The translations under genes and the position numbers were made by a program. Shown here piece after piece: positions 1,796 to 51,055 of a DNA stretch of 64,000 nt. The stretch lies in assembly GCF_039654945.1 (NCBI RefSeq), contig NW_027361804.1, positions 3,720,001 to 3,784,000 on the forward strand. The letters run 5' to 3'. The notes under the pieces are model-generated. The model saw only the letters and a program-made list of their open reading frames with translations, did not search any database and was not told the origin of the DNA. The stretch comes from Dendrobates tinctorius (Eukaryota). Each line of letters begins with the position of its first letter. The first letter of the stretch is position 1.

Positions 1796-3407
1796 AGTGG
1801 GTAGGTAGGAGGCATTCTCAGTGATGTCACCGCTGATCTCTGGTGATGGATAGGAGGCATTCTCAGTGATGTCACCTCTGATCTCTGGTGATGGATAGGA
1901 GGCATTCTCAGTGACGTCACCGCTGATCTCTGGTGATGGATAGGAGGCATTCTCAGTGACGTCACCGCTGATCTCTGGTGATGGATAGGAGGCATTCTCA
2001 GTGACGTCACCGCTGATCTCTGGTGATGGATAGGAGGCATTCTCAGTGACGTCACCGCTGATCTCTAGTGATGGATAGGAGGCATTCTCAGTGACGTCAC
2101 CGCTGATCTCTAGTGATGGATAGGAGGCATTCTCAGTGACGTCACCGCTGATCTCTAGTGATGGATAGGAGGCATTCTCAGTGACGTCACCGCTGATCTC
2201 TAGTGATGGATAGGAGGCATTCTCAGTGACGTCACCGCTGATCTCTAGTGATGGATAGGAGGCATTCTCAGTGACGTCACCGCTGATCTCTAGTGATGGA
2301 TAGGAGGCATTCTCAGTGACGTCACCTCTGATCTCTAGTGATGGATAGGAGACATTCTCAGTGACGTCACCGCTGATCTCTAGTGATGGATAGGAGACAT
2401 TCTCAGTGATGTCACCTCTGGTGATGGATAGGAGGCATTCTCAGTGATGTCACCTCTGATCTCTGGTGATGGATAGGAGGCATTCTCAGTGATGTCACCT
2501 CTGATCTCTAGTGATGGATAGGAGGCATTCTCAGTGACGTCACCGCTGATCTCTAGTGATGGATAGGAGGCATTCTCAGTGACGTCACCGCTGATCTCTA
2601 GTGATGGATAGGAGGCATTCTCAGTGACGTCACCGCTGATCTCTAGTGATGGATAGGAGGCATTCTCAGTGACGTCACCGCTGATCTCTAGTGATGGATA
2701 GGAGGCATTCTCAGTGACGTCACCGCTGATCTCTAGTGATGGATAGGAGGCATTCTCAGTGACGTCACCTCTGATCTCTAGTGATGGATAGGAGACATTC
2801 TCAGTGACGTCACCGCTGATCTCTAGTGATGGATAGGAGACATTCTCAGTGATGTCACCTCTGGTGATGGATAGGAGGCATTCTCAGTGATGTCACCTCT
2901 GATCTCTGGTGATGGATAGGAGGCATTCTCAGTGATGTCACCTCTGATCTCTAGTGATGGATAGGAGGCATTCTCAGTGATGTCACTGCTGATCTCTAGT
3001 GATGGATAGGAGACATTCTCAGTGATGTCACCGCTGATCTCTAGTGATGGATAGGAGGCATTCTCAGTGATGTCACCTCTGATCTCTAGTGATGGATAGG
3101 AGACATTCTCAGTGATGTCACCGCTGATCTCTAGTGATGGATAGGAGACATTCTCAGTGATGTCACCGCTGATCTCTAGTGATGGATAGGAGACATTCTC
3201 AGTGATGTCACCGCTGATCTCTGGTGATGGATAGGAGGCATTCTCAGTGATGTCACCGCTGATCTCTAGTGATGGATAGGAGACATTCTCAGTGATGTCA
3301 CCGCTGATCTCTAGTGATGGATAGGAGACATTCTCAGTGATGTCACCGCTGATCTCTAGTGATGGATAGGAGACATTCTCAGTGATGTCACCGCTGATCT
3401 CTGGTGA
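1796..3407. repeat. 45-bp minisatellite (copy A), in a DUSP16 5' intron
   Basis: Unit gatggataggaggcattctcagtga(c/t)gtcaccgctgatctct(a/g)gt, about 36 copies; same family as 39451-43755. Confidence 0.95.
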
Positions 3408-10473: not shown

Positions 10474-11178
10474 TGTGATCTACTGACCACTGCACCGTAA
10501 TAACGATATAATAACCACTGCACCGTAATAACGATATAATAACCACTGCACCGTAATAACGATATAATAACCACTGCACCGTAATAACGATATAATAACC
10601 ACTGCACCGTAATAACGATATAATAACCACTGCACCGTAATAACGATATAATAACCACTGCACCGTAATAATGAGATCTAAAAACCACTGCACCGTAATA
10701 ATGTGATCTACTGACCACTGCACCGTAACAATGAGATCTAATGACCACTGCACCGTAATATTGAGATCTACTGACCACTGCACCGTAATATTGAGAGCTA
10801 ATGACCACTGCACAGTAATAATGTGATCTACTGACCACTGCACCGTAATAACGAGATCTAATGACCACTGCACCGGAAAATTGTAATCTACTGACCACTG
10901 CACCGTAATATTGAGAGCTAATGACCACTGCACAGTAATAACGATATAATAACCACTGCACCGTAATAACGATATAATAACCACTGCACCGTAATAACGA
11001 TATAATAACCACTGCACCGTAATAACGATATAATAACCACTGCACCGTAATAATGAGATCTAAAAACCACTGCACCGTAATAATGTGATCTACTGACCAC
11101 TGCACCGTAACAATGAGATCTAATGACCACTGCACCGTAATATTGAGAGCTAATGACCACTGCACAGTAATAATGTGA
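10474..11178. repeat. 28/30-bp minisatellite, left part
   Basis: Units accactgcaccgtaataacgatataata and accactgcaccgtaataatgtgatctactg. Confidence 0.95.
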
Positions 11179-13026
11179 AACTGGGTCTGAGCAGAAAAAG
11201 TAAATTAATGTGCATGCAAAATGAATTTGCATATGAACACATGACCTTTACACAGAGAAAACCAAAAGCAAAACACAAAACAAATATCCTGGAATAAAAA
11301 AGTAAAAAAATATTGCAAAAATTGCATGAAGGTAGTAATAATAGTAATAATAAGGGTATTTAGTTAACATAATTTTGATCAAAATAATGTAGAAGCCATC
11401 CCGCCACGTCACGGCAACCCTTGTGGGACAGTCCTAACTCTTGTATTTAAAACCTTTCCACTTGTCAAGTGACGTAAATGTGAACAAGGACAGAGGGACT
11501 GAACCACCAGTAATAGTATAGGCCAGACAGGATGGATTTTCCAACTCAGAAACAGGGCGGTCACACCCTTATATGCACAGAATGCACAATGAAACAAATG
11601 AGAAACTGGGTCTGAGCAGAAAAAGTAAATTAATGTGCATGCAAAATGAATTTGCATATGAACACATGACCTTTACACAGAGAAAACCAAAAGCAAAACA
11701 CAAAACAAATATCCTGGAATAAAAAAGTAAAAAAATATTGCAAAAATTGCATGAAGGTAGTAATAATAGTAATAATAAGGGTATTTAGTTAACATAATTT
11801 TGATCAAAATAATGTAGAAGCCATCCCGCCACGTCACGGCAACCCTTGTGGGACAGTCCTAACTCTTGTATTTAAAACCTTTCCACTTGTCAAGTGACGT
11901 AAATGTGAACAAGGACAGAGGGACTGAACCACCAGTAATAGTATAGGCCAGACATTTACGTCACTTGACAAGTGGAAAGGTTTTAAATACAAGAGTTAGG
12001 ACTGTCCCACAAGGGTTGCCGTGACGTGGCGGGATGGCTTCTACATTATTTTGATCAAAATTATGTTAACTAAATACCCTTATTATTACTATTATTACTA
12101 CCTTCATGCAATTTTTGCAATATTTTTTTACTTTTTTATTCCAGGATATTTGTTTTGTGTTTTGCTTTTGGTTTTCTCTGTGTAAAGGTCATGTGTTCAT
12201 ATGCAAATTCATTTTGCATGCACATTAATTTACTTTTTCTGCTCAGACCCAGTTTCTCATTTGTTTCATTGTGCATTCTGTGCATATAAGGGTGTGACCG
12301 CCCTGTTTCTGAGTTGGAAAATCCATCCTGTCTGGCCTATACTATTACTGGTGGTTCAGTCCCTCTGTCCTTGTTCACATTTACGTCACTTGACAAGTGG
12401 AAAGGTTTTAAATACAAGAGTTAGGACTGTCCCACAAGGGTTGCCGTGACGTGGCGGGATGGCTTCTACATTATTTTGATCAAAATTATGTTAACTAAAT
12501 ACCCTTATTATTACTATTATTACTACCTTCATGCAATTTTTGCAATATTTTTTTACTTTTTTATTCCAGGATATTTGTTTTGTGTTTTGCTTTTGGTTTT
12601 CTCTGTGTAAAGGTCATGTGTTCATATGCAAATTCATTTTGCATGCACATTAATTTACTTTTTCTGCTCAGACCCAGTTTCTCATTTGTTTCATTGTGCA
12701 TTCTGTGCATATAAGGGTGTGACCGCCCTGTTTCTGAGTTGGAAAATCCATCCTGTCTGGCCTATACTATTACTGGTGGTTCAGTCCCTCTGTCCTTGTT
12801 CACATTTACGTCACTTGACAAGTGGAAAGGTTTTAAATACAAGAGTTAGGACTGTCCCACAAGGGTTGCCGTGACGTGGCGGGATGGCTTCTACATTATT
12901 TTGATCAAAATTATGTTAACTAAATACCCTTATTATTACTATTATTACTACCTTCATGCAATTTTTGCAATATTTTTTTACTTTTTTATTCCAGGATATT
13001 TGTTTTGTGTTTTGCTTTTGGTTTTC
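11177..13026. repeat. Inverted concatemer of a 425-bp unit (1.8 copies inverted plus 2.5 copies direct) inserted in the minisatellite
   Basis: 425-bp period (11177/11602; 12171/12596/13021). Inversion junction at 11952-11954. Flanked by the direct repeat cacagtaataatgtga (11163-11178 and 13026-13041). Confidence 0.9.
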
Positions 13027-15420
13027 ACAGTAATAATGTGATCTACTGACCACTGCACCGTAATAACGAGATCTAATGACCACTGCACCGGAATAATGTG
13101 ATCTACTGACCACTGCACCGTAATATTGAGAGCTAATGACCACTGCACAGTAATAATGTGATCTACTGACCACTGCACCGTAATATTGAGAGCTAATGAC
13201 CACTGCACAGTAATAATGTGATCTACTGACCACTGCACCGTAATAACGAGATCTAATGACCACTGCACAGTAATAATGTGATCTACTGACCACTGCACCG
13301 TAACAATGAGATCTAATGACCACTGCACCGTAACAATGAGATCTAATGACCACTGCACCGTAACAATGAGATCTAATGACCACTGCACCGTAATATTGAG
13401 ATCTACTGACCACTGCACCGTAATAACGAGATCTAATAACCACTGCACCGTAATATTGAGATCTAATGACCACTGCACCGTAATAATGAGATCTAATAAC
13501 CACTGCACCGTAATAATGTGATCTACTGACCACTGCACCGTAATAACGATATAATAACCACTGCACCGTAATAATGAGATCTAATGACCACTGCACCGTA
13601 ATAACGATATAATAACCACTGCACCGTAATAACGATATAATAACCACTGCACCGTAATAATGAGATCTAATGACCACTGCACCGTAATAATGTGATCTAA
13701 TGACCACTGCACCGTAATAATGTGATCTACTGACCACTGCACCGTAATAATGTGATCTACTGACCACTGCACCGTAATAATGAGAGCTAATGACCACTGC
13801 ACAGTAATAATGTGATCTACTGACCACTGCACCGTAATATTGAGAGCTAATGACCACTGCACAGTAATAATGTGATCTACTGACCACTGCACCGTAATAA
13901 CGAGATCTAATAACCACTGCACCGTAATATTGAGATCTAATGACCACTGCACCGTAATAATGATATCTAATAACCACTGCACCGTAATAATGTGATCTAC
14001 TGACCACTGCACCGTAATAACGATATAATAACCACTGCACCGTAATAATGAGATCTAATGACCACTGCACCGTAATAACGATATAATAACCACTGCACCG
14101 TAATAATGAGATCTAATAACCACTGCACCGTAATAATGTGATCTACTGACCACTGCACCGTAATAATGAGATCTAATGACCACTGCACCGTAATAATGTG
14201 ATCTAATAACCACTGCACCGTAACAATGAGATCTAATGACCACTGCACCGTAATAATGTGATCTAATAACCACTGCACCGTAATAATGAGATCTAATGAC
14301 CACTGCACCGTAATAATGAGATCTAATGACCACTGCACCGTAATAATGTGATCTAATAACCACTGCACCGTAATAATGTCATCTAATAACCACTGCACCG
14401 TAATAATGTCATCTAATGACCACTGCACCGTAATAATTTCATCTAATGACCACTGCACCGTAATAATGTGATCTAATAACCACTGCACCGTAACAATGAG
14501 ATCTAATGACCACTGCACCGTAATAATGTGATCTAATAACCACTGCACCGTAATAATGTGATCTAATAACCACTGCACCGTAATAATGAGATCTAATGAC
14601 CACTGCACCGTAATAATGTCATCTAATGACCACTGCACCGTAATAACGATATAATAACCACTGCACCGTAATAATGTGATCTAATGACCACTGCACCGTA
14701 ATAATGAGATCTAATGACCACTGCACCGTAATAATGTGATCTAATGACCACTGCACCGTAATAATGTGATCTAATGACCACTGCACCGTAATAATGAGAT
14801 CTAATGACCACTGTACCGCAACAACGATGTAATAACCACTGCAACGCAACAACGATGTAATAACCACTGCACCGCAACAACGATGTAATAACCTCTGCAC
14901 CGCAACAAAGATGTAATAACCACTGCACCGCAACAAAGATGTAATAACCTCTGCACCGCAACAACGATGTAATAACCTCTGCACCGCAACAAAGATGTAA
15001 TAACCTCTGCAATGCAACAAAGATGTAATAACCACTGCACCGCAACAAAGATGTAATAACCTCTGCACCGCAACAACGATGTAATAACCTCTGCACCGCA
15101 ACAACGATGTAATAACCACTGCACCGCAACAACGATATAATAACCACTGCACCGCAACAACGATGTAATAACCTCTGCACCGCAACAAAGATGTAATAAC
15201 CTCTGCACCGCAACAACAATATAATAACCACTGCACCGCAACAACGATGTAATAACCACTGCACCGCAACAACGATGTAATAACCACTGCACCGCAACAA
15301 CGATGTAATAACCTCTGCACCGCAACAACAATGTAATAACCACTGCACCGCAATAACAATATAATAACCTCTGCACCGCAACAACGATGTAATAACCACT
15401 GCACCGCAACAAAGATGTAA
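13026..15420. repeat. 28/30-bp minisatellite, right part
   Basis: Same family as 10474-11178; switches to the variant accactgcaccgcaacaacgatgtaata after about 14815. Confidence 0.95.
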
Positions 15421-16889
15421 TATGTCTTATATTCTAGGTTCTTCAGAGTAGCCACCTTTTGCTTTGATTACTGCTTTGCACACTCTTGGCATTCTCTTGA
15501 TGAGCTTCAAGAGGTAGTCACCGGAAATGGTTTTCACTTCACAGGTGTGCCCTGTCAGGTTTAATAAGTGGGATTTCCTGCCTTATAAATGGGGTTGGGA
15601 CCATCAGTTGTGTTGTGCAGAAGTCTGGTGGATACACAGCTGATAGTCCTACTGAATAGACTGTTAGCTGCTTTTTTCTTGCCATAAAACAAATTCTAAG
15701 TAAAGAAAAGCGAGCTGCCATCATTACTTTAAGAAATGAAGGTAAGTTAGTCTGAAAAATTGGGAAAACTTTGAAAGTGTCCCCAAGTGCAGTGACAAAA
15801 ACCATCAAGCGCTACAAAGAAACTGGCTCACATGAGGACCGCCTGAGGAAAGGAAGACCAAGAGTCACCTCCGCTGCGGAGGATAAGTTCATCCGAGTCA
15901 CCAGCCTCAGAAATCGCAGGTTAACAGCAGCTCAGATTAGAGACCAGGTCAATGCCACACAGAGTTCTAGCAGCAGACACATCTCTACAACAACTGTTAA
16001 GAGGAGACTTTGTGCAGCAGGCCTTCATGGTAAAATAGCTGCTAGGAAACCACTGCTAAGGACAGGCCACAAGCAGAAGAGACTTGTTTGGGCTAAAGAA
16101 CACAAGGAATGGACATTAGACCAGTGGAAATCTGTGCTTTGGTCTGATGAGTCCACATGTGAGATCTTTGGTTCCAACCACCGTGCCTTTGTGCGACACA
16201 GAAAAGGTGATCGGATGGACTCTACATGCCTGGTTCCCACCGTGAAGCATGGAGGAGGAGGTGTGATGGTGTGCGGGGGCTTTGCTGGTGACACTGTTGG
16301 GGATTTACTCAAAACTGAAGGCATACTGAACCAGCATGGCTACCACAGCATCTTGCAGCGGCATGCTATTCCATCCGGTTTGTGTTTAGTTGGACCATCA
16401 TTTATTTTTCAACAGGACAATGACCTCAAACCCACCTCCAGGCTGTGTAAGGGCTATCTGACCAAGAAGGAGAGTGATGGGGCGCTACGCCAGATGACCT
16501 GGCCTCCACAGTCACCAGACCTGAACCCAATCGAGATGGTTTGGGGTGAGCTGGACCGCAGAGTGAAGGCAAAAGGGCCAACAAGTGCTAAGCATCTCTG
16601 GGAACTCCTACAAGACTGGTGGAAGACCATTTCCGGTGACTACCTCTTGAAGCTCATCAAGAGAATGCAAAGAGTGTGCAAAGCTCAAAGCAAAAGGTGG
16701 CTACTGTGAAGAACCAAGAATATAAGACATATTTTCAGTTGTTTCACACTTTTTTTGTTAATTATATAATTCCACATGTGGTAATTCATAGTTTTGATGC
16801 CTTCAGAGTGAATCTACAATTTTCATAGTCATGAAAATAAAGAAAACTCTATGAATGAGAAGGTGTGTCCAAACTTTTGGTCTGTACCG
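15420..16889 (+). mobile_element. Tc1/mariner DNA transposon, DD38E (Intruder-type), left terminal inverted repeat (TIR) truncated
   Basis: Right TIR ...gtgtgtccaaacttttggtctgtaccg|TA. The inner-TIR match tatgtcttatattctaggttcttca (15421) pairs with about 16707-16731. Contains a transposase ORF. Confidence 0.92.
15668..16709 (+). pseudogene. Disabled Tc1-family transposase
   Basis: GRPR, WSDE, FQQDND and SPDLNPIE motifs. Start region inverted (15668-15695); in-frame TGA at 15753; apparent C-terminal frameshift after RVCKA. Confidence 0.88.
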
Positions 16890-17904: not shown

Positions 17905-18084
17905 GTAAGAGCCTGACACCCCCAACCTGTGTAATGTCCATCACACCCAGGAAAGTGGTCACTGGACTCATCTGCGGGGATGGAGGGGCCCCTGAGAGCC
18001 ACACAGGAGGGAGAAGTCCCCCGGGCTGGACACCAAACATGCAGCAGAGTGGTGAGCGCTGCTCGGGATGCGACTGGAGTAATG

Positions 18085-21000
18085 AACGCGCAGGAGGCGT
18101 GAGCGTGCCGGTACTATGGACGCGCAGGAGGCGTGAGCGTACCCGTAATATGGACGCGCAGGAGGCGTGAGCGTGCCGGTACTATGGACGCGCAGGAGGT
18201 GTGAGCGTGCCGGTACTATGGACGCGTAGGAGGCGTGAGCGTGCCCGTACTATGGACGCGCAGGAGGCGTGAGCGTGCCCGTACTATGGACGCGCAGGAG
18301 GCGTGAGCGTGCCCGTACTATGGACGCGCAGGAGGCGTGAGCGTACCCGTAATATGGATGCAGGAGGCGTGAGCGTGCCGGTACTATGGACGCGCAGGAG
18401 GCGTGAGCGTGCCGGTACTATGGACACGCAGGAGGCGTGAGCGTGCCGGTACTATGGACGAGCAGGAGGCGTGAGCGTGCCGGTACTATGGACGCGCAGG
18501 AGACGTGACCGTGCCGGTACTATGGACGCAGGAGGCGTGAGCATGGCGGTACTGTGGACACGCAGGAGACGTGAGCGTGCCCGTAATATGGACGCAGGAG
18601 GCGTGAGCGTGCCAGTACTATAGTTGCGCAGGAGATGTAAGCGTGCCCGTAATATGGACGCAGGAGGCGTGAGCGTGGCGGTACTATGGACGCGCAGGAG
18701 ACGTGAGCGTGCCCATAATATGGACGCAGGAGGCGTGAGCGTGCCGGTACTATGGACGCGAAGGAGACGTGAGCGTGCCTGTACTATGGACTCGCAGGAG
18801 ACGTGAGCGTGTCCGTAATATGGACGCAGGAGGTGTGAGCGTGCCGGTACAATGGACGAGCAGGAGGTGTGAGCGTAACGGTACTATGGACGCGCAGGAG
18901 ACGCGAGTGTGCCGGTACTATGGACGCAGGAGGTGTGAGCGTGTCGGTTCTATGGACGCAGGAGGTGTGAGCGTGCCAGTAATATGGACGCGCATGAGAT
19001 GTGAGCGTGCCAGTACTACGGACGCAGGAGGTATGAGCATGCCGGTAATATGGATGCGCAGGAGGTGTGAGCGTGCCGGTAATATGGACGCGCAGGAGGT
19101 GTGAGCGTGACAGTACTATTGACGCGCAGGAGGCGTGACCGAGCAGGTACTATGGACGTGCAGGAGGCGTGAGCGTGCAGGTACTATGGACGTGCAGGAG
19201 GTGCGAGCGTGACGGTAATATGGATGCGCAGGAAGTGCGAGCGTGACGGTACTATGGACGCGCAGAAGGTGTGAGCGTGCCGGTACTATGGACGTGCAGA
19301 AGGTGTGAGCGTGCCGGTACTATGGACGCGCAGAAGGTGTGAGCGTGCCGGTACTATGGACGTGCAGAAGGTGTGAGCGTGCCCGTACTATGGACGCGCA
19401 GGAGGCGTGAGCGTGCCCGTACTATGGACGCGCAGGAGGCGTGAGCGTGCCCGTACTATGGACGCGCAGGAGGCGTGAGCGTGCCCGTACTATGGACGCG
19501 CAGGAGGCGTGAGCGTGCCCGTACTATGGACGCGCAGGAGGCGTGAGCGTGCCCGTACTATGGACGCGCAGGAGGCGTGAGCGTGCCCGTACTATGGACG
19601 CGCAGGAGGCGTGAGCGTGCCCGTACTATGGACGCGCAGGAGGCGTGAGCGTGCCCGTACTATGGACGCGCAGGAGGCGTGAGCGTGCCCGTACTATGGA
19701 CGCAGGAGGCGTGAGCGTACCGGTACTATGAACGCGCAGGAGGCGTGAGCGTGCCGGTACTATGGACGCGCAGGAGGCGTGAGCGTACCCGTAATATGGA
19801 CGCGCAGGAGGCGTGAGCGTGCCGGTACTATGGACGCGCAGGAGGCGTGAGTGTGCCGGTACTATGGACGCGTAGGAGGCGTGAGCGTGCCCGTACTATG
19901 GACGCGCAGGAGGCGTGAGCGTGCCCGTACTATGGACGCGCAGGAGGCGTGAGCGTACCCGTAATATGGATGCAGGAGGCGTGAGCGTGCCGGTACTATG
20001 GACGCGCAGGAGGCGTGAGCGTGCCGATACTATGGACGAGCAGGAGGCGTGAGCGTGCCGGTACTATGGACGCGCAGGAGACGTGACCGTGCCGGTACTA
20101 TGGACGCAGGAGGCGTGAGCATGGCGGTACTGTGGACACGCAGGAGACGTGAGCGTGCCCGTAATATGGACGCAGGAGGCGTGAGCGTGCCAGTACTATA
20201 GTTGCGCAGGAGATGTAAGCGTGCCCGTAATATGGACGCAGGAGGCGTGAGCGTGCCCATAATATGGACGCAGGAGGCGTGAGCGTGCCGGTACTATGGA
20301 CGCGAAGGAGACGTGAGCGTGCCTGTACTATGGACGCGCAGGAGACGTGAGCGTGTCCGTAATATGGACGCAGGAGGTGTGAGCGTGCCGGTACAATGGA
20401 CGAGCAGGAGGTGTGAGCGTAACGGTACTATGGACGCGCAGGAGACGCGAGTGTGCCGGTACTATGGACGCAGGAGGTGTGAGCGTGTCGGTTCTATGGA
20501 CGCAGGAGGTGTGAGCGTGCCAGTAATATGGACGCGCATGAGATGTGAGCGTGCCAGTACTACGGACGCAGGAGGTATGAGCATGCCGGTAATATGGATG
20601 CGCAGGAGGTGTGAGCGTGCCGGTAATATGGACGCGCAGGAGGTGTGAGCGTGACAGTACTATTGACGCGCAGGAGGCGTGACCGAGCAGGTACTATGGA
20701 CGTGCAGGAGGCGTGAGCGTGCAGGTACTATGACGCGCAGGAGGCGTGACCGAGCAGGTACTATGGACGTGCAGGTACTATGGACGTGCAGGAGGTGCGA
20801 GCGTGACGGTAATATGGATGCGCAGGAAGTGCGAGCGTGACGGTACTATGGACGCGCAGAAGGTGTGAGCGTGCCGGTACTATGGACGCGCAGAAGGTGT
20901 GAGCGTGCCGGTACTATGGACGCGCAGAAGGTGTGAGCGTGCCGGTACTATGGACGCGCAGAAGGTGTGAGCGTGCCGGTACTATGGACGCAGGAGGCGT

Positions 21001-24000
21001 GAGCGTGCCGGTACTATGGACACAGGAGGCGTGAGCGTGCCGGTACTATGGACGCGCAGGAGGCGTGAGCGTGCCCGTACTATGGACGCGCAGGAGGCGT
21101 GAGCGTGCCCGTACTATGGAGGCGCAGGAGGCGTGAGCGTGCCCGTACTATGGAGGCGCAGGAGGCGTGAGCGTGCCCGTACTATGGACGCGCAGGAGGC
21201 GTGAGCGTGCCCGTACTATGGACGCGCAGGAGGCGTGAGCGTGCCGGTACTATGGACGAGCAGGAGGCGTGAGCGTGCCGGTACTATGGACGCGCAGGAG
21301 ACGTGACCGTGCCGGTACTATGGACGCAGGAGGCGTGAGCATGGCGGTACTGTGGACACGCAGGAGACGTGAGCGTGCCCGTAATATGGACGCAGGAGGC
21401 GTGAGCGTGCCAGTACTATAGTTGCGCAGGAGATGTAAGCGTGCCCGTAATATGGACGCAGGAGGCGTGAGCGTGCCCATAATATGGACGCAGGAGGCGT
21501 GAGCGTGCCGGTACTATGGATGCGAAGGAGACGTGAGCGTGCCTGTACTATGGACGCGCAGGAGACGTGAGCGTGTCCGTAATATGGACGCAGGAGGTGT
21601 GAGCGTGCCGGTACAATGGACGAGCAGGAGGTGTGAGCGTAACGGTACTATGGACGCGCAGGAGACGCGAGTGTGCCGGTACTATGGACGCAGGAGGTGT
21701 GAGCGTGTCGGTTCTATGGACGCAGGAGGTGTGAGCGTGCCAGTAATATGGACGCGCATGAGATGTGAGCGTGCCAGTACTACGGACGCAGGAGGTATGA
21801 GCATGCCGGTAATATGGATGCGCAGGAGGTGTGAGCGTGCCGGTAATATGGACGCGCAGGAGGTGTGAGCGTGACAGTACTATTGACGCGCAGGAGGCGT
21901 GACCGAGCAGGTACTATGGACGTGCAGGAGGCGTGAGCGTGCAGGTACTATGACGCGCAGGAGGCGTGACCGAGCAGGTACTATGGACGTGCAGGTACTA
22001 TGGACGTGCAGGAGGTGCGAGCGTGACGGTAATATGGATGCGCAGGAAGTGCGAGCGTGACGGTACTATGGACGCGCAGAAGGTGTGAGCGTGCCGGTAC
22101 TATGGACGCGCAGAAGGTGTGAGCGTGCCGGTACTATGGACGCGCAGAAGGTGTGAGCGTGCCGGTACTATGGACGTGCAGAAGGTGTGAGCATGCCGGT
22201 ACTATGGACGCAGGAGGTGTGAGCGTGCCGGTACTATGGACGCGCAGGAGGCGTGAGCGTGCCGGTACTATGGACGCGCAGGAGGCGTGAGCGTGCCCGT
22301 ACTATGGACGCGCAGGAGGCGTGAGCGTGCCCGTACTATGGACGCGCAGGAGGCGTGAGCGTGCCCGTACTATGGACGCGCAGGAGGCGTGAGCGTGCCC
22401 GTACTATGGACGCGCAGGAGGCGTGAGCGTGCCCGTACTATGGACGCGCAGGAGGCGTGAGCGTGCCCGTACTATGGACGCGCAGGAGGCGTGAGCGTGC
22501 CCGTACTATGGACGCGCAGGAGGCGTGAGCGTGCCCGTACTATGGACGCGCAGGAGGCGTGAGCGTACCCGTAATATGGACGCAGGAGGCGTGAGCGGTG
22601 CCAGTACTATGGACGCGCAGGAGGCGTGAGCGTGCCGGTAGTATGGACGCGCAGGAGGCGTGAGCGTGCCGGTACTATGGACGAGCAGGAGGCGTGAGCG
22701 TGCCGGTACTATGGACGCGCAGGAGGCGTGAGCGTGCCCGTACTATGGACGCGCAGGAGGCGTGAGCGTGCCCGTACTATGGACGCGCAGGAGGCGTGAG
22801 CGTGCCCGTACTATGGACGCGCAGGAGGCGTGAGCGTGCCCGTACTATGGACGCGCAGGAGGCGTGAGCTTGCCCGTACTATGGACGCGCAGGAGGCGTG
22901 AGCGTGCCCGTACTATGGACGCGCAGGAGGCGTGAGCGTGCCCGTACTATGGACGCGCAGGAGGCGTGAGCGTGCCCGTACTATGGACGCGCAGGAGGAG
23001 TGAGCGTGCCCGTACTATGGACGCGCAGGAGGCGTGAGCGTGCCCGTACTATGGACGCGCAGGAGGCGTGAGCGTGCCCGTACTATGGACGCGCAGGAGG
23101 CGTGAGCGTACCCGTAATATGGACGCAGGAGGCGTGAGCGGTGCCAGTACTATGGACGCGCAGGAGGCGTGAGCGTGCCGGTACTATGGACGCGCAGGAG
23201 GCGTGAGCGTGCCGGTACTATGGACGAGCAGGAGGCGTGAGCGTGCCGGTACTATGGACACGCAGGAGACGTGACCGTGCCGGTACTATGGACGCCGGAG
23301 GCGTGAGCATGGCGGTACTGTGGACACGCAGGAGGCGTGAGCGTGCCCGTAATATGGACGCAGGAGGCGTGAGCGTGCCAGTACTATAGACGCGCAGGAG
23401 ATGTAAGCGTGCCCGTAATATGGACGCAGGAGGCGTGAGCATGGCGGTACTATGGACGCTCAGGAGACGTGAGCGTGCCCATAATATGGACGCAGAAGGC
23501 GTGAGCGTGCCGGTACTATGGACGCGCAGGAGACGTGAGCGTACCCGTAATATGGACGCAGGAGGTGTGAGCGTGCCTGTACTATGGACGCGCAGGAGAC
23601 GTGAGCGTGCCCGTAATATGGACGCAGAAGGCGTGAGCGTGCCGGTACTATGGACGCGCAGGAGACGTGAGCGTACCCGTAATATGGACGCAGAAGGCGT
23701 GAGCGTGCCTGTACTATGGACGCGCAGGAGACGTGAGCGTGCCCGTAATATGGACGCAGGAGGTGTGAGCGTGCCGGTACAATGGACGAGCAGGAGGTGT
23801 GAGCGTATCGGTACTATGGACGCGCAGGAGACGCGAGCGTGCCGGTACTATGGACGCAGGAGGTGTGAGCGTGTCGGTTCTATGGACGCAGGAGGTGTGA
23901 GCGTGCCAGTAATATGGACGTGCATGAGATGTGAGCGTGCCAGTACTACGGACGCAGGAGGTATGAGCATGCCGGTAATATGGATGTGCAGGAGGTGTGA

Positions 24001-27000
24001 GCGTGCCCATAATATGGACGCAGGAGGCGTGAGCGTGCCAGTACTATAGTTGCGCAGGAGATGTAAGCGTGCCCGTAATATGGACGCAGGAGGCGTGAGC
24101 GTGGCGGTACTATGGACGCGCAGGAGACGTGAGCGTGCCCATAATATGGACGCTGGAGGCGTGAGCGTGCCGGTACTATGGACGCGCAGGAGGCGTGAGC
24201 GTGCCCGTACTATGGACGTGCAGGAGGCGTGAGCGTGCCCGTACTATGGACGTGCAGGAGGCGTGAGCGTGCCCGTACTATGGACGTGCAGGAGGCGTGA
24301 GCGTGCCCGTACTATGGACGTGCAGGAGGCGTGAGCTTGCCCGTACTATGGACGCGCACGAGGCGTGAGCGTGCCCGTACTATGGACGCGAAGGAGGCGT
24401 GAGCGTGCCCGTACTATGGACGCGCAGGACGCGTGAGCGTGCCTGTACTATGGACGCGCAGGAGGCGTGAGCGTACCCGTAATATGGACGCAGGAGGCGT
24501 GAGCGGTGCCAGTACTATGGACGCGCAGGAGGCGTGAGCGTGCCGGTACTATGGACGCGCAGGAGGCGTGAGCGTGCCGGTACTATGGACGAGCAGGAGG
24601 CGTGAGCGTGCCGGTACTATGGACACGCAGGAGACGTGACCGTGCCGGTACTATGGACGCCGGAGGCGTGAGCATGGCGGTACTGTGGACACGCAGGAGA
24701 CGTGAGCGTGCCCGTAATATGGACGCAGGAGGCGTGAGCGTGCCAGTACTATAGACGCGCAGGAGAGGTAAGCGTGCCCGTAATATGGACGCAGGAGGCG
24801 TGAGCGTGGTGGTACTATGGACGCGCAGGAGACGTGAGCGTGCCCATAATATGGACGCAGAAGGCGTGAGCGTGCCGGTACTATGGACACGCAGGAGACG
24901 TGAGCGTGCCCATAATATGGACGCAGAAGGCGTGAGCGTGCCGGTACTATGGACGCGCAGGAGACGTGAGCGTACCCGTAATATGGACGCAGGAGGTGTG
25001 AGCGTGCTGTACTATGGACGCGCAGGAGACGTGAGCGTGCCCGTAATATGGACGCAGAAGGCGTGAGCGTGCCGGTACTATGGACGCGCAGGAGACGTGA
25101 GCGTACCCGTAATATGGACGCAGAAGGCGTGAGCGTGCCTGTACTATGGACGCGCAGGAGACGTGAGCGTGCCCGTAATATGGACGCAGGAGGTGTGAGC
25201 GTGCCGGTACAATGGACGAGCAGGAGGTGTGAGCGTATCGGTACTATGGACGCGCAGGAGACGCGAGCGTGCCGGTACTATGGACGCAGGAGGTGTGAGC
25301 GTGTCGGTTCTATGGACGCAGGAGGTGTGAGCGTGCCAGTAATATGGACGCGCATGAGATGTGAGCGTGCCAGTACTACGGACGCAGGAGGTATGAGCAT
25401 GCCGGTAATATGGATGCGCAGGAGGTGTAAGCGTGCCCGTAATATGGACGCAGGAGGCGTGAGCGTGCCAGTACTATAGTTGCGCAGGAGATGTAAGCGT
25501 GCCCGTAATATGGACGCAGGAGGCGTGAGCGTGGCGGTACTATGGACGCGCAGGAGACGTGAGCGTGCCCATAATATGGACGCAGGAGGCGTGAGCGTGC
25601 CGGTACTATGGAAGCGAAGGAGACGTGAGCGTGCCTGTACTATGGACGCGCAGGAGACGTGAGCGTGTCCGTAATATGGACGCAGGAGGTGTGAGCGTGC
25701 CGGTACAATGGACGAGCAGGAGGTGTGAGCGTAACGGTACTATGGACGCGCAGGAGACGCGAGCGTGCCGGTACTATGGACGCAGGAGGTGTGAGCGTGT
25801 CGGTTCTATGGACGCAGGAGGTGTGAGCGTGCCAGTAATATGGACGCGCATGAGATGTGAGCGTGCCAGTACTACGGACGCAGGAGGTATGAGCATGCCG
25901 GTAATATGGATGCGCAGGAGGTGTGAGCGTGCCGGTAATATGGACGCGCAGGAGTTGTGAGCGTGACAGTACTATTGACGCGCAGGAGGCGTGACCGAGC
26001 AGGTACTATGGACGTGCAGGAGGCGTGAGCGTGCAGGTGCTATGGACGTGCAGGAGGTGCGAGCGTGACGGTAATATGGATGCGCAGGAAGTGCGAGCGT
26101 GACGGTACTATGGACGCGCAGAAGGTGTGAGCGTGCCGGTACTATGGACGCGCAGAAGGTGTGAGCGTGCCGGTACTATGGACGCGCAGAAGGTGTGAGC
26201 GTGCCGGTACTATGGACGTGCAGAAGGTGTGAGCGTGCCGGTACTATGGACGCAGGAGGCGTGAGCGTGCCGGTACTATGGACGCAGGAGGCGTGAGCGT
26301 GCCGGTACTATGGACGCGCAGGAGGCGTGAGCGTGCCCGTACTATGGACGCGCAGGAGGCGTGAGCGTGCCCGTACTATGGACGCGCAGGAGGCGTGAGC
26401 GTGCCCGTACTATGGAGGCGCAGGAGGTGTGAGCGTGCCCGTACTATGGACGCGCAGGAGGCGTGAGCGTGCCCGTACTATGGACGCGCAGGAGGCGTGA
26501 GCGTGCCCGTACTATGGACGCGCAGGAGGCGTGAGCGTACCCGTAATATGGACGCAGGAGGCGTGAGCGGTGCCAGTACTATGGACGCGCAGGAGGCGTG
26601 AGCGTGCCGGTACTATGGACGCGCAGGAGGCGTGAGCGTGCCGGTACTATGGACGAGCAGGAGGCGTGAGCGTGCCGGTACTATGGACGCGCAGGAGACG
26701 TGACCGTGCCGGTACTATGGACGCCGGAGGCGTGAGCATGGCGGTACTGTGGACACGCAGGAGACGTGAGCGTGACCGTAATATGGACGCAGGAGGCGTG
26801 AGCGTGCCAGTACTATAGACGCGCAGGAGATGTAAGCGTGCCCGTAATATGGACGCAGGAGGCGTGAGCGTGGCGGTACTATGGACGCGCAGGAGACGTG
26901 AGCGTGCCCATAATATGGACGCAGAAGGCGTGAGCGTGCCGGTACTATGGACGCGCAGGAGACGTGAGCGTACCCGTAATATGGACGCAGGAGGTGTGAG

Positions 27001-29215
27001 CGTGCCTGTACTATGGACGCGCAGGAGACGTGAGCGTGCCTGTACTATAGACGCGCAGGAGACGTGAGCGTGCCCGTAATATGGACGCAGAAGGCGTGAG
27101 CGTGCCTGTACTATGGACGCGCAGGAGACGTGAGCGTGCCCGTAATATGGACGCAGGAGGTGTGAGCGTGCCGGTACAATGGACGAGCAGGAGGTGTGAG
27201 CGTATCGGTACTATGGACGCGCAGGAGACGCGAGCGTGCCGGTACTATGGACGCAGGAGGTGTGAGCGTGTCGGTTCTATGGACGCAGGAGGTGTGAGCG
27301 TGCCAGTAATATGGACGCACATGAGATGTGAGCGTGCCAGTACTACGGACGCAGGAGGTATGAGCATGCCGGTATGGACGCGCAGGAGGTGTGAGCGTGA
27401 CAGTACTATTGACGCGCAGGAGGCGTGACCGAGCAGGTACTATGGACGTGCAGGAGGCGTGAGCGTGCAGGTACTATGGACGCGCAGGAGGTGCGAGCGT
27501 GACGGTAATATGGATGCGCAGGAAGTGCGAGCGTGACGGTACTATGGACGCGCAGAAGGTGTGAGCGTGCCGGTACTATGGACGTGCAGAAGGTGTGAGC
27601 GTGCCGGTACTATGGACGCGCAGAAGGTGTGAGCGTGCCGGTACTATGGACGTGCAGAAGGTTTGAGCGTGCCGGTACTATGGACGCAGGAGGTGTGAGC
27701 GTGCCGGTACTATGGACGCAGGAGGTGTGAGCGTGCCGGTACTATGGACGCAGGAGGTGTGAGCGTGCCGGTACTATGGACGCGCAGGAGGCGTGAGCGT
27801 GCCCGTACTATGGACGCGCAGGAGGCGTGAGCGTGCCCGTAATATGGACGCAGAAGGCGTAAGCGTGCCGGTACTATGGACGCGCAGGAGACGTGAGCGT
27901 ACCCGTAATATGGACGCAGGAGGTGTGAGCGTGCCTGTACTATGGACGCGCAGGAGACGTGAGCGTGCCCGTAATATGGACGCAGGAGGTGTGAGCGTGC
28001 CCGTACTATGGACGCGCAGGAGACGTGAGCGTGCCGGTAATATGGACGCGCAGGAGGTGTGAGCGTGACAGTACTATTGACGCACAGGAGGCGTGACCGT
28101 GCAGGTACTATGGACGCACAGGAGGCGTGACCGTGCAGGTACTATGGACGCACAGGAGGCGTGACCGTGCAGGTACTATGGACGCAGGAGGTGTGAGCGT
28201 GCCGGTACTATGGACGCAGGAGGTGTGAGCGTGCCGGTACTATGGACGCAGGAGGTGTGAGCGTGCCGGTACTATGGACGCAGGAGGTGTGAGCGTGCCG
28301 GTACTATGGACGCAGGAGGTGTGAGCGTGCCAATACTATGGATGCAGGAGGTGTGAGCGTGCCGGTACTATGGACGCAGGAGGTGTGAGCGTGCCGGTAC
28401 TATGGACGCAGGAGGTGTGAGCTTGCCGGTACTATGGACGCAGGAGGTGTGAGCTTGCCGGTACTATGGACGCAGGAGGTGTGAGCGTGCCGGTACTATG
28501 GACGCAGGAGGTGTGAGCGTGCCGGTACTATGGACGCAGGAGGTGTGAGCGTGCCGGTACTATGGACGCAGGAGGCGTGAGCTTGCCGGTACTATGGACG
28601 CAGGAGGCGTGAGCGTACCCGTAATATGGACGCAGGAGGCGTGAGCGTGCCGGTACTATGGACGCAGGAGGTGTGAGCGTGCCCGTACTATGGACGCAGG
28701 AGGTGTGAGCGTGCCGGTACCATGGACGCAGGAGGTGTGAGCGTGCCGGTACTATGGACGCAGGAGGTGTGAGCGTGCCGGTACTATGGACGCAGGAGGT
28801 GTGAGCGTGCCGGTACTATGGACGCAGGAGGTGTGAGCTTGCCGGTACTATGGACGCAGGAGGTGTGAGCTTGCCGGTACTATGGACGCAGGAGGTGTGA
28901 GCTTGCCGGTACTATGGACGCAGGAGGTGTGAGCTTGCCGGTACTATGGACGCAGGAGGTGTGAGCTTGCCGGTACTATGGACGCAGGAGGTGTGAGCGT
29001 GCCGGTACTATGGACGCAGGAGGTGTGAGCGTGCCAGTAATACGGACGTGCAGGAGCTGTGCCAGTAATATGGATGCGCAGGAAATGTGAGCGTGCCAGT
29101 AATATGGACGCACAGGAGGTGAGTGTGCCAGTACTATGGACCTGCAGCAAGCATGAGTGTGCACTTATTATGGATGTGCAGGAGGTGTGAGCGTGTCAGT
29201 AATCTGAGCGTGCGG
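18085..29215. repeat. 32/34-bp CpG-rich minisatellite, about 11.1 kb, with higher-order blocks, in CREBL2 intron 1
   Basis: Unit ggacgcgcaggaggcgtgagcgtgccggtactat; near-identical variant blocks recur at 18769, 20313, 21533 and 25625. Confidence 0.97.
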
Positions 29216-39450: not shown

Positions 39451-42400
39451 GTGGATAAGCGGCATTCTCAGTGATGTCACCTCTGATCTCTGGTGATGGA
39501 TAGGAGGCTTTCTCAGTGATGTCACCTCTGATCTCTAGTGATGGATAGGAGGCATTCTCAGTGATGTCACCGCTGATCTCTGGTGATGGATAGGAGACAT
39601 TCTCAGTGATGTCACCGCTGATCTCTGGTGATGGATAGGAGACATTCTCAGTGATGTCACCGCTGATCTCTGGTGATGGATAGGAGGCATTCTCAGTGAT
39701 GTCACCGCTGATCTCTGGTGATGGATAGGAGACATTCTCAGTGATGTCACCGCTGATCTCTGGTGATGGATAGGAGGCATTCTCAGTGATGTCACCGCTG
39801 ATCTCTAGTGATGGATAGGAGGCATTCTCAGTGATGTCACCACTGATCTCTAGTGATGGATAGGAGACATTCTCAGTGATGTCACCTCTGATCTCTGGTG
39901 ATGGATAGGAGGCATTCTCAGTGATGTCACCTCTGATCTCTAGTGATGGATAGGAGGCATTCTCAGTGATGTCACCGCTGATCTCTGGTGATGGATAGGA
40001 GACATTCTCAGTGATGTCACCGCTGATCTCTGGTGATGGATAGGAGGCATTCTCAGTGATGTCACCGCTGATCTCTAGTGATGGATAGGAGGCATTCTCA
40101 GTGATGTCACCACTGATCTCTAGTGATGGATAGGAGACATTCTCAGTGATGTCACCTCTGATCTCTGGTGATGGATAGGAGGCATTCTCAGTGATGTCAC
40201 CTCTGATCTCTAGTGATGGATAGGAGGCATTCTCAGTGATGTCACCTCTGATCTCTGGTGATGGATAGGAGGCATTCTCAGTGATGTCACCTCTGATCTC
40301 TGGTGATGGATAGGAGGCATTCTCAGTGATGTCACCGCTGATCTCTGGTGATGGATAGGAGGCATTCTCAGTGATGTCACCTCTGATCTCTGGTGATGGA
40401 TAGGAGACATTCTCAGTGATATCACCGCTGATCTCTAGTGATGGATAGGAGACATTCTCAGTGATGTCACCGCTGATCTCTAGTGATGGATAGGAGACAT
40501 TCTCAGTGATGTCACCGCTGATCTCTGGTGATGGATAGGAGGCATTCTCAGTGATGTCACCTCTGATCTCTAGTGATGGATAGGAGGCATTCTCAGTGAT
40601 GTCACCTCTGATCTCTAGCGATGGATAGGAGGCATTCTCAGCGATGTCACCGCTGATCTCTAGTGATGGATAGGAGGCATTCTCAGCAATGTCACCTCTG
40701 ATCTCTAGTGATGGATAGGAGGCATTCTCAGTGATGTCACCTCTGATCTCTGGTGATGGATAGGAGACATTCTCAGTGATGTCACCTCTGATCTCTGGTG
40801 ATGGATAGGAGACATTCTCAGTGATGTCACCTCTGATCTCTGATGATGGATAGGAGGCATTCTCAGTGATGTCACCTCTGATCTCTAGTGATGGATAGGA
40901 GGCATTCTCAGTGATGTCACCTCTGATCTCTAGTGATGGATAGGAGGCATTCTCAGTGATGTCACCTCTGATCTCTAGTGATGGATAGGAGACATTCTCA
41001 GTGATGTCACCTCTGATCTCTGGTGATGGATAGGAGACATTCTCAGTGATGTCACCTCTGATCTCTGGTGATGGATAGGAGACATTCTCAGTGATGTCAC
41101 CTCTGATCTCTGGTGATGGATAGGAGGCATTCTCAGTGATGTCACCTCTGATCTCTGGTGATGGATAGGAGACATTCTCAGTGATGTCACCTCTGATCTC
41201 TAGTGATGGATAGGAGGCATTCTCAGTGATGTCATCTCTGATCTCTAGTGATGGATAGGAAGCATTCTCAGTGATGTCACTGCTGATCTCTAGTGACGGA
41301 TAGGAGGCATTCTCAGTGATGTCACCTCTGATCTCTGGTGACGGATAGGAGACATTCTCAGTGATGTCACCGCTGATCTCTGGTGATGGATAGGAGACAT
41401 TCTCAGTGATGTCACCGCTGATCTCTAGTGATGGATAGGAGGCATTCTCAGTGATGTCACCACTGATCTCTAGTGATGGATAGGAGACATTCTCAGTGAT
41501 GTCACCACTGATCTCTAGTGATGGATAGGAGACATTCTCAGTGATGTCACCTCTGATCTCTAGTGATGGATAGGAGGCATTCTCAGTGATGTCACCACTG
41601 ATCTCTAGTGATGGATAGGAGACATTCTCAGTGATGTCACCTCTGATCTCTGGTGATGGATAGGAGACATTCTCAGTGATGTCACCTCTGATCTCTGGTG
41701 ATGGATAGGAGACATTCTCAGTGATGTCACCTCTGATCTCTAGTGATGGATAGGAGGCAGTCTCAGTGATATCACCTCTGATCTCTAGTGATGGATAGGA
41801 GGCAGTCTCAGTGATATCACCTCTGATCTCTAGTGATGGATAGGAGGCATTCTCAGTGATGTCACCTCTGATCTCTAGTGATGGATAGGAGGCATTCTCA
41901 GTGATGTCACCTCTGATCTCTAGTGATGGATAGGAGACAGTCTCAGTGATGTCACCGCTGATCTCTGGTGATGGATAGGAGGCATTCTCAGTGATGTCAC
42001 CTCTGATCTCTGGTGATGGATAGGAGGCATTCTCAGTGATGTCACCGCTGATCTCTGGTGATGGATAGGAGGCATTCTCAGTGATGTCACCTCTGATCTC
42101 TGGTGATGGATAGGAGACATTCTCAGTGATATCACCGCTGATCTCTAGTGATGGATAGGAGACATTCTCAGTGATGTCACCGCTGATCTCTAGTGTTGGA
42201 TAGGAGACATTCTCAGTGATGTCACCGCTGATCTCTGGTGATGGATAGGAGGCATTCTCAGTGATGTCACCTCTGATCTCTGGTGATGGATAGGAGACAT
42301 TCTCAGTGATGTCACCTCTGATCTCTGATGATGGATAGGAGGCATTCTCAGTGATGTCACCTCTGATCTCTAGTGATGGATAGGAGGCATTCTCAGTGAT

Positions 42401-43755
42401 GTCACCTCTGATCTCTAGTGATGGATAGGAGGCATTCTCAGTGATGTCACCTCTGATCTCTAGTGATGGATAGGAGACATTCTCAGTGATGTCACCTCTG
42501 ATCTCTGGTGATGGATAGGAGACATTCTCAGTGATGTCACCTCTGATCTCTGGTGATGGATAGGAGACATTCTCAGTGATGTCACCTCTGATCTCTGGTG
42601 ATGGATAGGAGGCATTCTCAGTGATGTCACCTCTGATCTCTGGTGATGGATAGGAGACATTCTCAGTGATGTCACCTCTGATCTCTAGTGATGGATAGGA
42701 GGCATTCTCAGTGATGTCATCTCTGATCTCTAGTGATGGATAGGAAGCATTCTCAGTGATGTCACTGCTGATCTCTAGTGACGGATAGGAGGCATTCTCA
42801 GTGATGTCACCTCTGATCTCTGGTGACGGATAGGAGACATTCTCAGTGATGTCACCGCTGATCTCTGGTGATGGATAGGAGACATTCTCAGTGATGTCAC
42901 CGCTGATCTCTAGTGATGGATAGGAGGCATTCTCAGTGATGTCACCACTGATCTCTAGTGATGGATAGGAGACATTCTCAGTGATGTCACCTCTGATCTC
43001 TGGTGATGGATAGGAGACATTCTCAGTGATGTCACCACTGATCTCTAGTGATGGATAGGAGACATTCTCAGTGATGTCACCTCTGATCTCTAGTGATGGA
43101 TAGGAGGCATTCTCAGTGATGTCACCACTGATCTCTAGTGATGGATAGGAGACATTCTCAGTGATGTCACCTCTGATCTCTGGTGATGGATAGGAGACAT
43201 TCTCAGTGATGTCACCTCTGATCTCTGGTGATGGATAGGAGACATTCTCAGTGATGTCACCTCTGATCTCTAGTGATGGATAGGAGGCAGTCTCAGTGAT
43301 ATCACCTCTGATCTCTAGTGATGGATAGGAGGCAGTCTCAGTGATATCACCTCTGATCTCTAGTGATGGATAGGAGGCATTCTCAGTGATGTCACCTCTG
43401 ATCTCTAGTGATGGATAGGAGGCATTCTCAGTGATGTCACCTCTGATCTCTAGTGATGGATAGGAGACATTCTCAGTGATGTCACCTCTGATCTCTGGTG
43501 ATGGATAGGAGACATTCTCAGTGATGTCACCTCTGATCTCTAGTGATGGATAGGAGACATTCTCAGTGATGTCACCTCTGATCTCTGGTGATGGATAGGA
43601 GACATTCTCAGTGATGTCACCTCTGATCTCTAGTGATGGATAGGAGGCATTCTCAGTGATGTCACCGCTGATCTCTAGTGATGGGTAGGAGGCATTTTCA
43701 GTGATGTCACCTCTGATCTCTGGTGATGGATAGGAGGCATTCTCAGTGATATCAC
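39451..43755. repeat. 45-bp minisatellite (copy B), about 95 units
   Basis: Same unit as 1796-3407 but with a TGATGTCA core. Confidence 0.97.
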
Positions 43756-50010: not shown

Positions 50011-50718
50011 AGAACTAATTAGCAGTGAAAGGGAGGAAGGGAGAGCCGCAGTCTAGCAAGGGTGCCACTATCATATCTTAGTGTGCCAACCTCCTCTGGT
50101 AGGTAGCTACGATGATAGGTGGAGAATAGGGTAATAGGTTTTTTTTGGCTGTGTCTGGTCCCTTATCTTTTTATGGAGACACACATTTTTACATACTATT
50201 TCACTAAACACGGGGTTTTGTTTTGATGTGTTTTAACTTCAGTACATAAATAAAATTTACCTTTTACGAGATTATATGTTCACATGGTTATTGTCTCCCT
50301 TTGGACAGATGTCTGTCCAGCCTCTGTTTGAAGACTTCCATTGAAGGAGAACTCACCACTTCTCGTGGCAGCCTGTTCCAATCATTGATTACCTTCAATG
50401 TCAAAAAGTTTTTTCTAATATAATAATAATAATCTTTATTTATATAGTGCCAACATATTCCGCAGCGCTTTACAGTTTAACAGTTTCAAAACACAAGTCA
50501 TAAGTAACAACGTTAACAATACAATAATTAAAGTAAAATAAGCCGCCCCTGCTCGTGAGAGCTTACAATCTACAATGAGGTGGGGGAGAGAGTACAGGTG
50601 TGTATTTACAATGATCTATTTACATTGATGGTCCAACCATCTTGAGAAGGTGGTGGACAGAGATAGTGAATGAGCTACACACGCACACTTACACAGAGAA
50701 TGACTGTGATTAGTGAAC

Positions 50719-51055
50719 TTCATATTCTTTGGAGTAAATTCATGGACTTTATATATGTCATCCCCTGATGAAGAAGTGGTATACACTTTGAAACGCGTTG
50801 GGAAACAAACAGTTAATCTTTCTCATAACCTGGATAAGTGAATTTGTCTAGCAGCGCACTGAAGTCCATGAATTTACTCCAAAGAATCTGAAGTTTTACG
50901 GTCACAGAGTTGACCTTTGGACGTGCAGCAAGCTGACTGCGGATCTTATATGCCTGAACCTCTCCTGAAAAGGGTGAGTAGATTCTAATTTATTCTTCTA
51001 ACAATAACCCGGATAAGACCCTATTGCGCTTTTTGTTCCTTTAGTTTGATTGCAT
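50719..51055 (+). mobile_element. Short non-autonomous Penelope/retrozyme-like insertion with a hammerhead ribozyme
   Basis: 14-bp TSD tgtgattagtgaac (50705-50718 and 51056-51069); about 32-bp 5' inverted segment; hammerhead motif; T-rich 3' end. Confidence 0.72.
50761..50803 (+). ncRNA. Minimal type I hammerhead ribozyme
   Basis: TCCC CTGATGA A GAAGTG-GTATA-CACTTT GAAA CGCG TT GGGA: stem I TCCC/GGGA, 6-bp stem II, intact core, palindromic ACGCGT stem III, GUU cleavage triplet. Confidence 0.8.

Follow-up and report, generated by a model that had tools for sequence, protein, structure and literature searches.

How did a block of identical 425-bp repeats, part of them inverted, come to lie within a 30-bp minisatellite of Dendrobates tinctorius? 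The block is found in a stretch of 64,000 nucleotides (assembly GCF_039654945.1, contig NW_027361804.1, positions 3,720,001 to 3,784,000 of the forward strand), which was analysed as a whole and is referred to below as the window. It most likely represents a single, very recent insertion from a retroelement family that is non-autonomous and non-coding and has a unit of 425 bp. As to the process, we favour, with a probability of roughly 0.6, reverse transcription of the Penelope type, in which both strands of the target would have primed synthesis on a non-coding RNA that was either multimeric or circular.

To describe the insert, window positions 11952-12376 (425 bp, 36.5% GC) were taken as the reference unit U, and U coordinates follow the plus strand of the right arm. 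Within the window, only 11177-13026 consists of unit sequence, which amounts to 4.36 copies with no mismatch between any two of them, and no further unit copies were found in the 64 kb. The insert is built of two arms that meet in a short overlap:

11952-13026, plus strand: right arm, 1075 bp, 2.53 head-to-tail copies; inner end at U1, outer end at U225 after TTTC; the sense strand would be the plus strand
11177-11954, minus strand: left arm, 778 bp, 1.83 copies in reverse complement; outer end at U305 after TTTC, inner end at U378; the sense strand would be the minus strand
11952-11954, no strand assigned: inner junction, a 3-nt ACA overlap between the arms, where the 3' ends of two complementary DNAs (cDNAs) would anneal

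Both ends of the insert fall in mid-unit, and microhomologies at all three junctions are limited to 1-3 nt. The structure is far beyond chance, and the insert is real and very young. The first-pass annotation of this DNA had described apparently identical head-to-tail units that start and end mid-unit, 1.8 copies inverted against 2.5 with an ACA joint, and a 16-nt duplication of the flank in register. Measurement agrees with it on each point, with 1.83 and 2.53 copies, the overlap at 11952-11954, and CACAGTAATAATGTGA present on both sides of the insert. The first C of the right copy and the last GA of the left copy can also be read as unit sequence, and we therefore read the duplication as 15-16 bp with 1-2 nt of junction microhomology. 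The host sequence and the elements of the target site are as follows:

10477-11176, no strand assigned: host 30-bp minisatellite, left flank (Tandem Repeats Finder, period 30, 24 copies; tract called as 10477-11175)
13042-15406, no strand assigned: host 30-bp minisatellite, right flank (Tandem Repeats Finder; tract called as 13026-15406)
11163-11178, plus strand: target-site duplication, left copy CACAGTAATAATGTGA, its last GA also readable as unit sequence
13026-13041, plus strand: target-site duplication, right copy CACAGTAATAATGTGA, its first C also readable as unit sequence
10772-10878, plus strand: empty-site proxy, an uninterrupted paralogous minisatellite block equal to 11124-11178 joined to 13042-13093, with no mismatch

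The 30-bp monomers of the host are arranged in a 60-bp higher order. The caution, already voiced in the first reading, that the duplication lies in repetitive sequence is well founded, as register alone is ambiguous in an array with a period of 60 bp: duplication of 15 bp and deletion of either 15 or 45 bp each fit some paralog. A segmental duplication was observed within the minisatellite (10589-10796 and 10971-11178, 98% identical), and together with the right flank it continues past the insertion site except for one 30-bp monomer, which makes the empty-site proxy available. Across the empty-site junction, the match is perfect over 55 + 52 = 107 nt when one copy of the duplication is removed. 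Alignment of the paralog 10589-10940 with 10971-11178 plus 13042-13190, again with one 15-bp copy removed, shows a single clean gap of one 30-nt monomer, located 54 nt left of the insertion site, and 3 mismatches before the paralogs diverge. Retaining both copies would require a gap of 15 nt and five mismatches in a cluster. The paralogous empty-site proxy thus supports the view that the 15-16-bp repeat is a genuine target-site duplication.

We have also addressed the question of whether one arm could be a copy of the other. Had the right-arm strand snapped back at ACA/TGT, with 374 nt between the arms, it would have met 695 nt of template before the flank, and the left arm extends for 775 nt past the overlap; the opposite direction would supply 727 nt for the 1072 nt required. 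Template-length arithmetic rules out a snap-back copy in both directions, and each arm therefore had a separate template. The inner junction is asymmetric and without a perfect palindrome, and the nearest complementary register keeps 45 nt between the arms.

The outer ends of the two arms, read in the sense of U, are ...GGTTTTC^TCTG (U225) and ...CAGTTTC^TCAT (U305), where the caret marks the end of the arm. Both lie at TTTC^TC. In the circular unit, the hexamer TTTCTC is confined to the U strand and to two places on it, U222-227 and U302-307; for a pair of junctions placed at random, the probability of agreeing in that six-letter context is 0.003, a figure calculated post hoc. Copies of the motif remain inside the right arm:

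12173-12178, plus strand: internal TTTCTC, U222-227, the hexamer behind whose TTTC the right arm stops; it recurs from 12598 (U222) and, as the U302 site, from 12253 and 12678

The two start sites are 80 nt apart, and no separate tail of 30-40 bp was recognised. The 3' ends of the target are alike, ...AATGTGA on the top strand and ...TACTGTG on the bottom strand, and for this reason a preference of the enzyme and annealing of the primer are not separable. The left primer end, AATGTGA, pairs with UCUCAUU of the left-arm start site at 6 of 7 positions. Whichever the cause of start-site choice, both 3' ends of the target paired with single-stranded templates that had one polarity. The inner ends, ACA-3' (top) and TGT-3' (bottom), are complementary, as mutual annealing of two cDNA ends predicts.

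These features can be accommodated in a single series of events. A Penelope-like element would supply the reverse transcriptase and the GIY-YIG endonuclease, and these would work on the two strands of the minisatellite at a staggered cut. The 15-16-bp stagger would free two 3' ends, ...AATGTGA (top) and ...TACTGT(G) (bottom), and each of them would prime cDNA synthesis inside a multimeric or circular RNA with the polarity of the right-arm plus strand, at UUUC^UC (U305 and U225). One cDNA would grow to 1.83 and the other to 2.53 unit lengths, the two would anneal by their 3' ends (ACA-3' and TGT-3') and each would be extended on the other, and fill-in of the stagger would create the target duplication. 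The first-pass annotation had also suggested target-primed insertion of the reverse-transcription type, and this suggestion is now backed by the empty-site proxy, the independent templates of the arms, the TTTC^TC starts on one strand and the Penelope-like architecture. Its more specific proposal, rolling reverse transcription of a 425-nt circle, is not borne out to the same degree: such an RNA circle is possible and is not needed, and a multimeric linear RNA or template jumping fits equally well.

Comparable architectures are known from described elements. Insertions of Penelope-like elements are partial tandems, often with an adjoining inverted 5'-truncated copy, and show a bias towards microsatellites (Craig et al. 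2021, PMC8557442). Purified protein of the Penelope-like element Poseidon prefers AT-rich targets, of which it cuts and extends either strand, and it begins synthesis at internal positions of the RNA; in vitro, hammerhead cleavage is dispensable for insertion, and a multi-copy transcript is thought to be used (Frangieh et al. 2024, PMC11167929). The insert resembles the insertions described in these two studies in its partial tandem with an adjoining inverted and 5'-truncated copy, in its repetitive AT-rich target, and in apparent priming on both strands with starts inside the template. Target duplications of Penelope-like insertions are variable and longer than 10 bp, and the one found here is 15-16 bp. 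Differences are that the 425-bp unit carries no reverse transcriptase/GIY-YIG gene, no hammerhead and no recognised 30-40-bp tail, and that the two starts are 80 nt apart. Some Penelope-like clades lack hammerheads, and non-autonomous relatives of these elements give multicopy head-to-tail insertions (PMC8557442). Among them, the non-autonomous Chlamys elements, such as MRC1 of Chlamydomonas, are passengers of a hammerhead-lacking Penelope clade, with pseudo-long terminal repeats (pseudo-LTRs) and multicopy head-to-tail insertions (PMC8557442); they differ from the present case in their green-alga lineage and N-terminal endonuclease and share no sequence kinship with the unit, whose host is a vertebrate.

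The second group of relevant systems are non-LTR retrozymes, which in animals consist of 150-450-bp tandem units with hammerheads (Cervera and de la Pena 2020, PMC7229834) and of which the Xenopus families show kinship with pseudo-LTRs of Penelope (Li, Clavereau and Pollet 2026, bioRxiv 10.64898/2026.07.22.740005). As described in these studies, they are non-coding, low-GC units of a few hundred bp, arranged head-to-tail and flanked by target duplications longer than 4 bp; amphibians carry them in abundance, and their mobility is ascribed to Penelope-like elements, as we propose for the 425-bp unit. Retrozymes are also expressed as linear and circular RNA. Being a short, non-coding, low-GC tandem unit (425 bp, 36.5% GC), the unit falls within the 150-450-bp range. 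In contrast to retrozymes, which by definition carry a type I hammerhead in each unit, it yields no match in Rfam, and a CUGANGA core is present on neither of its strands. Because the architecture fits and the defining hammerhead is lacking, we file the insert, by analogy, as working like a Penelope-mobilised passenger rather than a strict retrozyme. It is a clean example of a known process and not a new element class.

To place the unit in its family, assembled contigs of public runs, none of which is on record as RNA, were aligned with the window. In one DNA run, 2376 contigs match the unit (782 at no less than 99%, 726 at 95-99% and 750 at 90-95%), and the summed word depths of unit-matching contigs reach about 10^5, compared with 5-17 for single joints. 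Most sampled words of the unit are present even in runs of only 8-90 million letters, from nine studies. The unit is thus an abundant, diverged repeat family in Dendrobates tinctorius. Contigs under a second species label are about 90-95% similar to the unit and span approximately U313 through U425 to U167, most densely up to about U130, while the T-rich remainder is uncovered. A one-off or undescribed origin is not supported for a repeat that is this abundant and diverged and that is also present in a relative. Two metagenome scans revealed no unit copies, and unit strings were not found in published papers. A vector or transgene concatemer was considered as well and rejected, with no plasmid match and with the unit being an abundant native family.

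Family contigs also preserve joints. A 443-nt contig of another run is collinear over more than one unit, and therefore a unit-to-unit joint exists elsewhere. The match of one contig stops at U306 and continues into unrelated sequence, adjoining the start site of the left arm at U305. All 15 of the inversion joints listed among family contigs run from an antisense arm to a sense arm, at varied unit positions and with the same polarity as at the insert. In addition, a recurrent subfamily variant departs from the insert copy just below U313 (window 11594), with the antisense reading TGAATAAAAAACAAATCTGAACTGAGAAA; it occurs in contigs of three runs and under both species labels, and on the sense strand this variant at U313 also contains TTTCTC.

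The coding capacity of the unit is negligible. Its longest open reading frame (ORF) is 82 aa, the two longest have no exact match in the protein collection, and the unit is non-coding. ARAGORN found no part derived from tRNA, as in a short interspersed element (SINE), in the unit; a B-box-like GGTTCAGTCCC was spotted by eye.

Another insert in the window, 337 bp long, lies at 50719-51055 (region 50705-51069). It is accompanied by a duplication of 14 bp, TGTGATTAGTGAAC, and by an inverted 5' piece of 34 nt (50716-50749 and 50862-50895). A minimal type I hammerhead was recognised in it by eye at about 50760-50812, with TCCC, CTGATGA, helix II, GAAA, the palindromic ACGCGT and GGGA. This hammerhead-bearing insert with its duplication and inverted piece indicates that insertion of the Penelope/retrozyme type operates in this genome. 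Just to the right of it, two minus-strand ORF fragments, 51774-52238 and 52978-53319, match Pfam RVT_1 (E 3e-19 and 4e-11), and no GIY-YIG domain was found in ORFs neighbouring them.

Rfam, searched with 2.4 kb, 569 nt and 101 nt of unit sequence, gave 0 ribozyme matches at E values of 10 or below, and at the gathering score no ribozyme was found in the whole window. The hammerhead at about 50760-50812 served as a positive control and was missed, even at E up to 10 on 121 nt, so that Rfam negatives are unreliable for minimal hammerheads of the Penelope type. The core motif was therefore searched directly, and it is this search that carries weight: neither CTGANGA nor C.GA.GA occurs on either strand of the circular unit. 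The first-pass statement that the unit holds no canonical ribozyme stands, with Rfam and the motif search in accord. Two descriptors of ribozymes resembling that of hepatitis delta virus (HDV), both unvalidated, were also applied. Such a ribozyme is a nested double pseudoknot of P1, P1.1, P2, P3 and P4 in which a catalytic C adjoins P4. The strict one gave 0 matches on the unit and the relaxed one a single match:

12002-12081 (U51-130), plus (sense) strand: weak drawing of an HDV-like topology, recurring in every unit

It comprises P1 at 51-57/80-86 with two G-U pairs, P2 at 60-65/125-130, P3 at 67-69/77-79, L3 GTGACGT and P4 at 92-115. The relaxed descriptor also matches 9% of dinucleotide shuffles. 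The drawing has C at position +1, no P1.1, and the only C of J4/2 four bases away from P4, and the cut that it predicts, between U50 and U51, agrees with neither inner arm end (U1, U378). We treat the drawing at U51-130 as unsupported as a ribozyme and as no better than chance. Circular folds are mildly more stable than those of shuffles (z of -1.85 for the sense and -0.74 for the antisense strand), and the RNA is not rod-like. Substitutions in contigs of the relative are too few to probe the fold by covariation.

A narrower version of the template would be a closed 425-nt RNA circle, or a unit-length RNA freed by a yet unrecognised self-cleaving motif in the conserved core (approximately U313 through U425 to U130, including the HDV-like U51-130), which both target strands would copy by rolling-circle reverse transcription. 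We regard this version as unlikely. If true, it would represent a vertebrate "retrozyme" lineage without a hammerhead.

Rolling-circle copying of extrachromosomal DNA, also raised in the first reading, stays as a minority rival, which we consider improbable. According to this explanation, a 425-bp satellite monomer was excised as extrachromosomal circular DNA and amplified by rolling circle, one strand switch produced the inversion, and the concatemer was end-joined into a staggered break. Perfect identity of copies, both ends in mid-unit and microhomologies of just 1-3 nt at all three junctions would be expected from such events. The contig runs, not recorded as RNA, offer no support for an RNA stage, and the unit is partly satellite-like, with a contig longer than one unit seen elsewhere. 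Set against this, the 15-16-bp duplication, supported by the proxy, is not normal for end joining, and a DNA-level origin gives no reason for both ends to lie at one hexamer with one strand polarity. It also leaves unexplained the single polarity of inversion joints and the like architecture of the hammerhead-bearing insert in the window.

In twin priming by L1, one RNA is primed by both 3' ends of the target, a short microhomology links the resulting cDNAs, and the product is flanked by a duplication of 7-20 bp. Ostertag and Kazazian reportedly described in 2001 L1-type twin priming with such a duplication length, a 5' inversion and microhomology at the junction. The insert shares with it these same marks, namely two primed 3' ends, the 5' inversion, the microhomology at the inner junction and a flanking duplication of suitable length. 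Classical twin priming by an enzyme of the long interspersed element (LINE) type, acting on a multimeric transcript of a satellite-like repeat, could accordingly be envisaged, and reverse-transcriptase fragments, unassigned as to type, are present in the window (51774-52238 and 52978-53319). We nevertheless hold this explanation, too, to be improbable. The insert has no poly(A) tail and no 3' microsatellite at either outer end (sense ends ...GGTTTTC and ...CAGTTTC), both of its arms are longer than one template unit, and the second primer is not simply upstream on one linear RNA. Multi-unit head-to-tail insertions with an inverted copy are the described norm of Penelope-like elements and not of LINE-driven SINEs (PMC8557442), and extension on two strands has been demonstrated with a Penelope-like protein but, according to the authors of that work, not with R2 or L1 (PMC11167929).

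A monomer or dimer might also have been inserted first, its tandem and inverted copies being made later in place by unequal exchange or template switching in replication. The host, a recombination-prone minisatellite with an internal segmental duplication (10589-10796, 10971-11178, 98%), would be suited to this. Yet the 4.36 copies are identical, whereas paralogous blocks in the flanks have already diverged by about 1% and one monomer, the outer partial units stop at one motif, and the arms are not related by one simple fold-back, all of which makes later amplification very unlikely. An artefact, either a chimeric fold-back read or a mis-join in a repeat-rich region, would agree with the lack of contigs shown to bridge the insert junctions and with the trouble that tandem and inverted Penelope-type structures cause in assemblies (PMC8557442), but it is hardly credible when the flanks are collinear rather than inverted and resume in register with a duplication matching the paralogous empty site over 107 nt, the inner junction is asymmetric with 45 nt left between the arms in the nearest complementary register, and a like architecture recurs in the window in the 337-bp insert.

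Several observations weigh against Penelope-type reverse transcription as the origin of the insert. At the target site, a 15-bp duplication and a 45-bp deletion share one register in the 60-bp higher-order satellite, and the 45-bp deletion model also fits another paralog, with 1 mismatch in 120. The common TTTC^TC context could stem from similar primer 3' ends rather than from enzyme specificity, and microhomology-guided end joining could mimic it. No contig shown bridges the junctions of the insert locus. Among the 15 inversion joints of the family, 5 are near fold-backs with short sides (21-31 nt) and may be artefacts or reflect mapping at short palindromes; with these near fold-backs, and with short sides at all 15, the joints count as weak support. 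The unit lacks the hammerhead core, and no 30-40-bp tail was recognised at the insert ends. The tie to Penelope would come from the architecture of insertion, and, no run being on record as RNA, transcription of the unit and the polarity of its RNA are inferences only.

Several other features were observed in the window. Just after the 30-bp minisatellite, at 15771-16706 on the plus strand, a 312-aa ORF with HTH_Tnp_Tc3_2, HTH_32 and a short DDE_3 match is a remnant of a Tc1/mariner-type transposase. An uninterrupted 435-aa ORF at 60873-62177 on the minus strand encodes a full seven-transmembrane domain of the rhodopsin family (7tm_1, E 1e-41) and is probably a single-exon receptor gene. Minisatellite arrays, their periods ranging from 30 to 58 bp, make up about two-thirds of 1-43755; the array at 18082-29195 extends over 11 kb and has a unit of 34 bp. 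One unit, of 45 bp, occurs twice, at 1806-3407 with TGACGTCA and at 39452-43755 with TGATGTCA. This minisatellite-rich part looks subtelomere-like.

How tandem and inverted insertions of Penelope elements are assembled is still deduced mostly from one in vitro system. The locus described here is an unusually clean in vivo record, with no decay of copies, independent arms, one start hexamer on one strand and a nearby paralogous empty site. It indicates that a passenger without a hammerhead can insert as multimers, in agreement with the dispensability of hammerhead cleavage in vitro, and it suggests that retrozyme censuses based on hammerheads may miss part of this class in amphibians.

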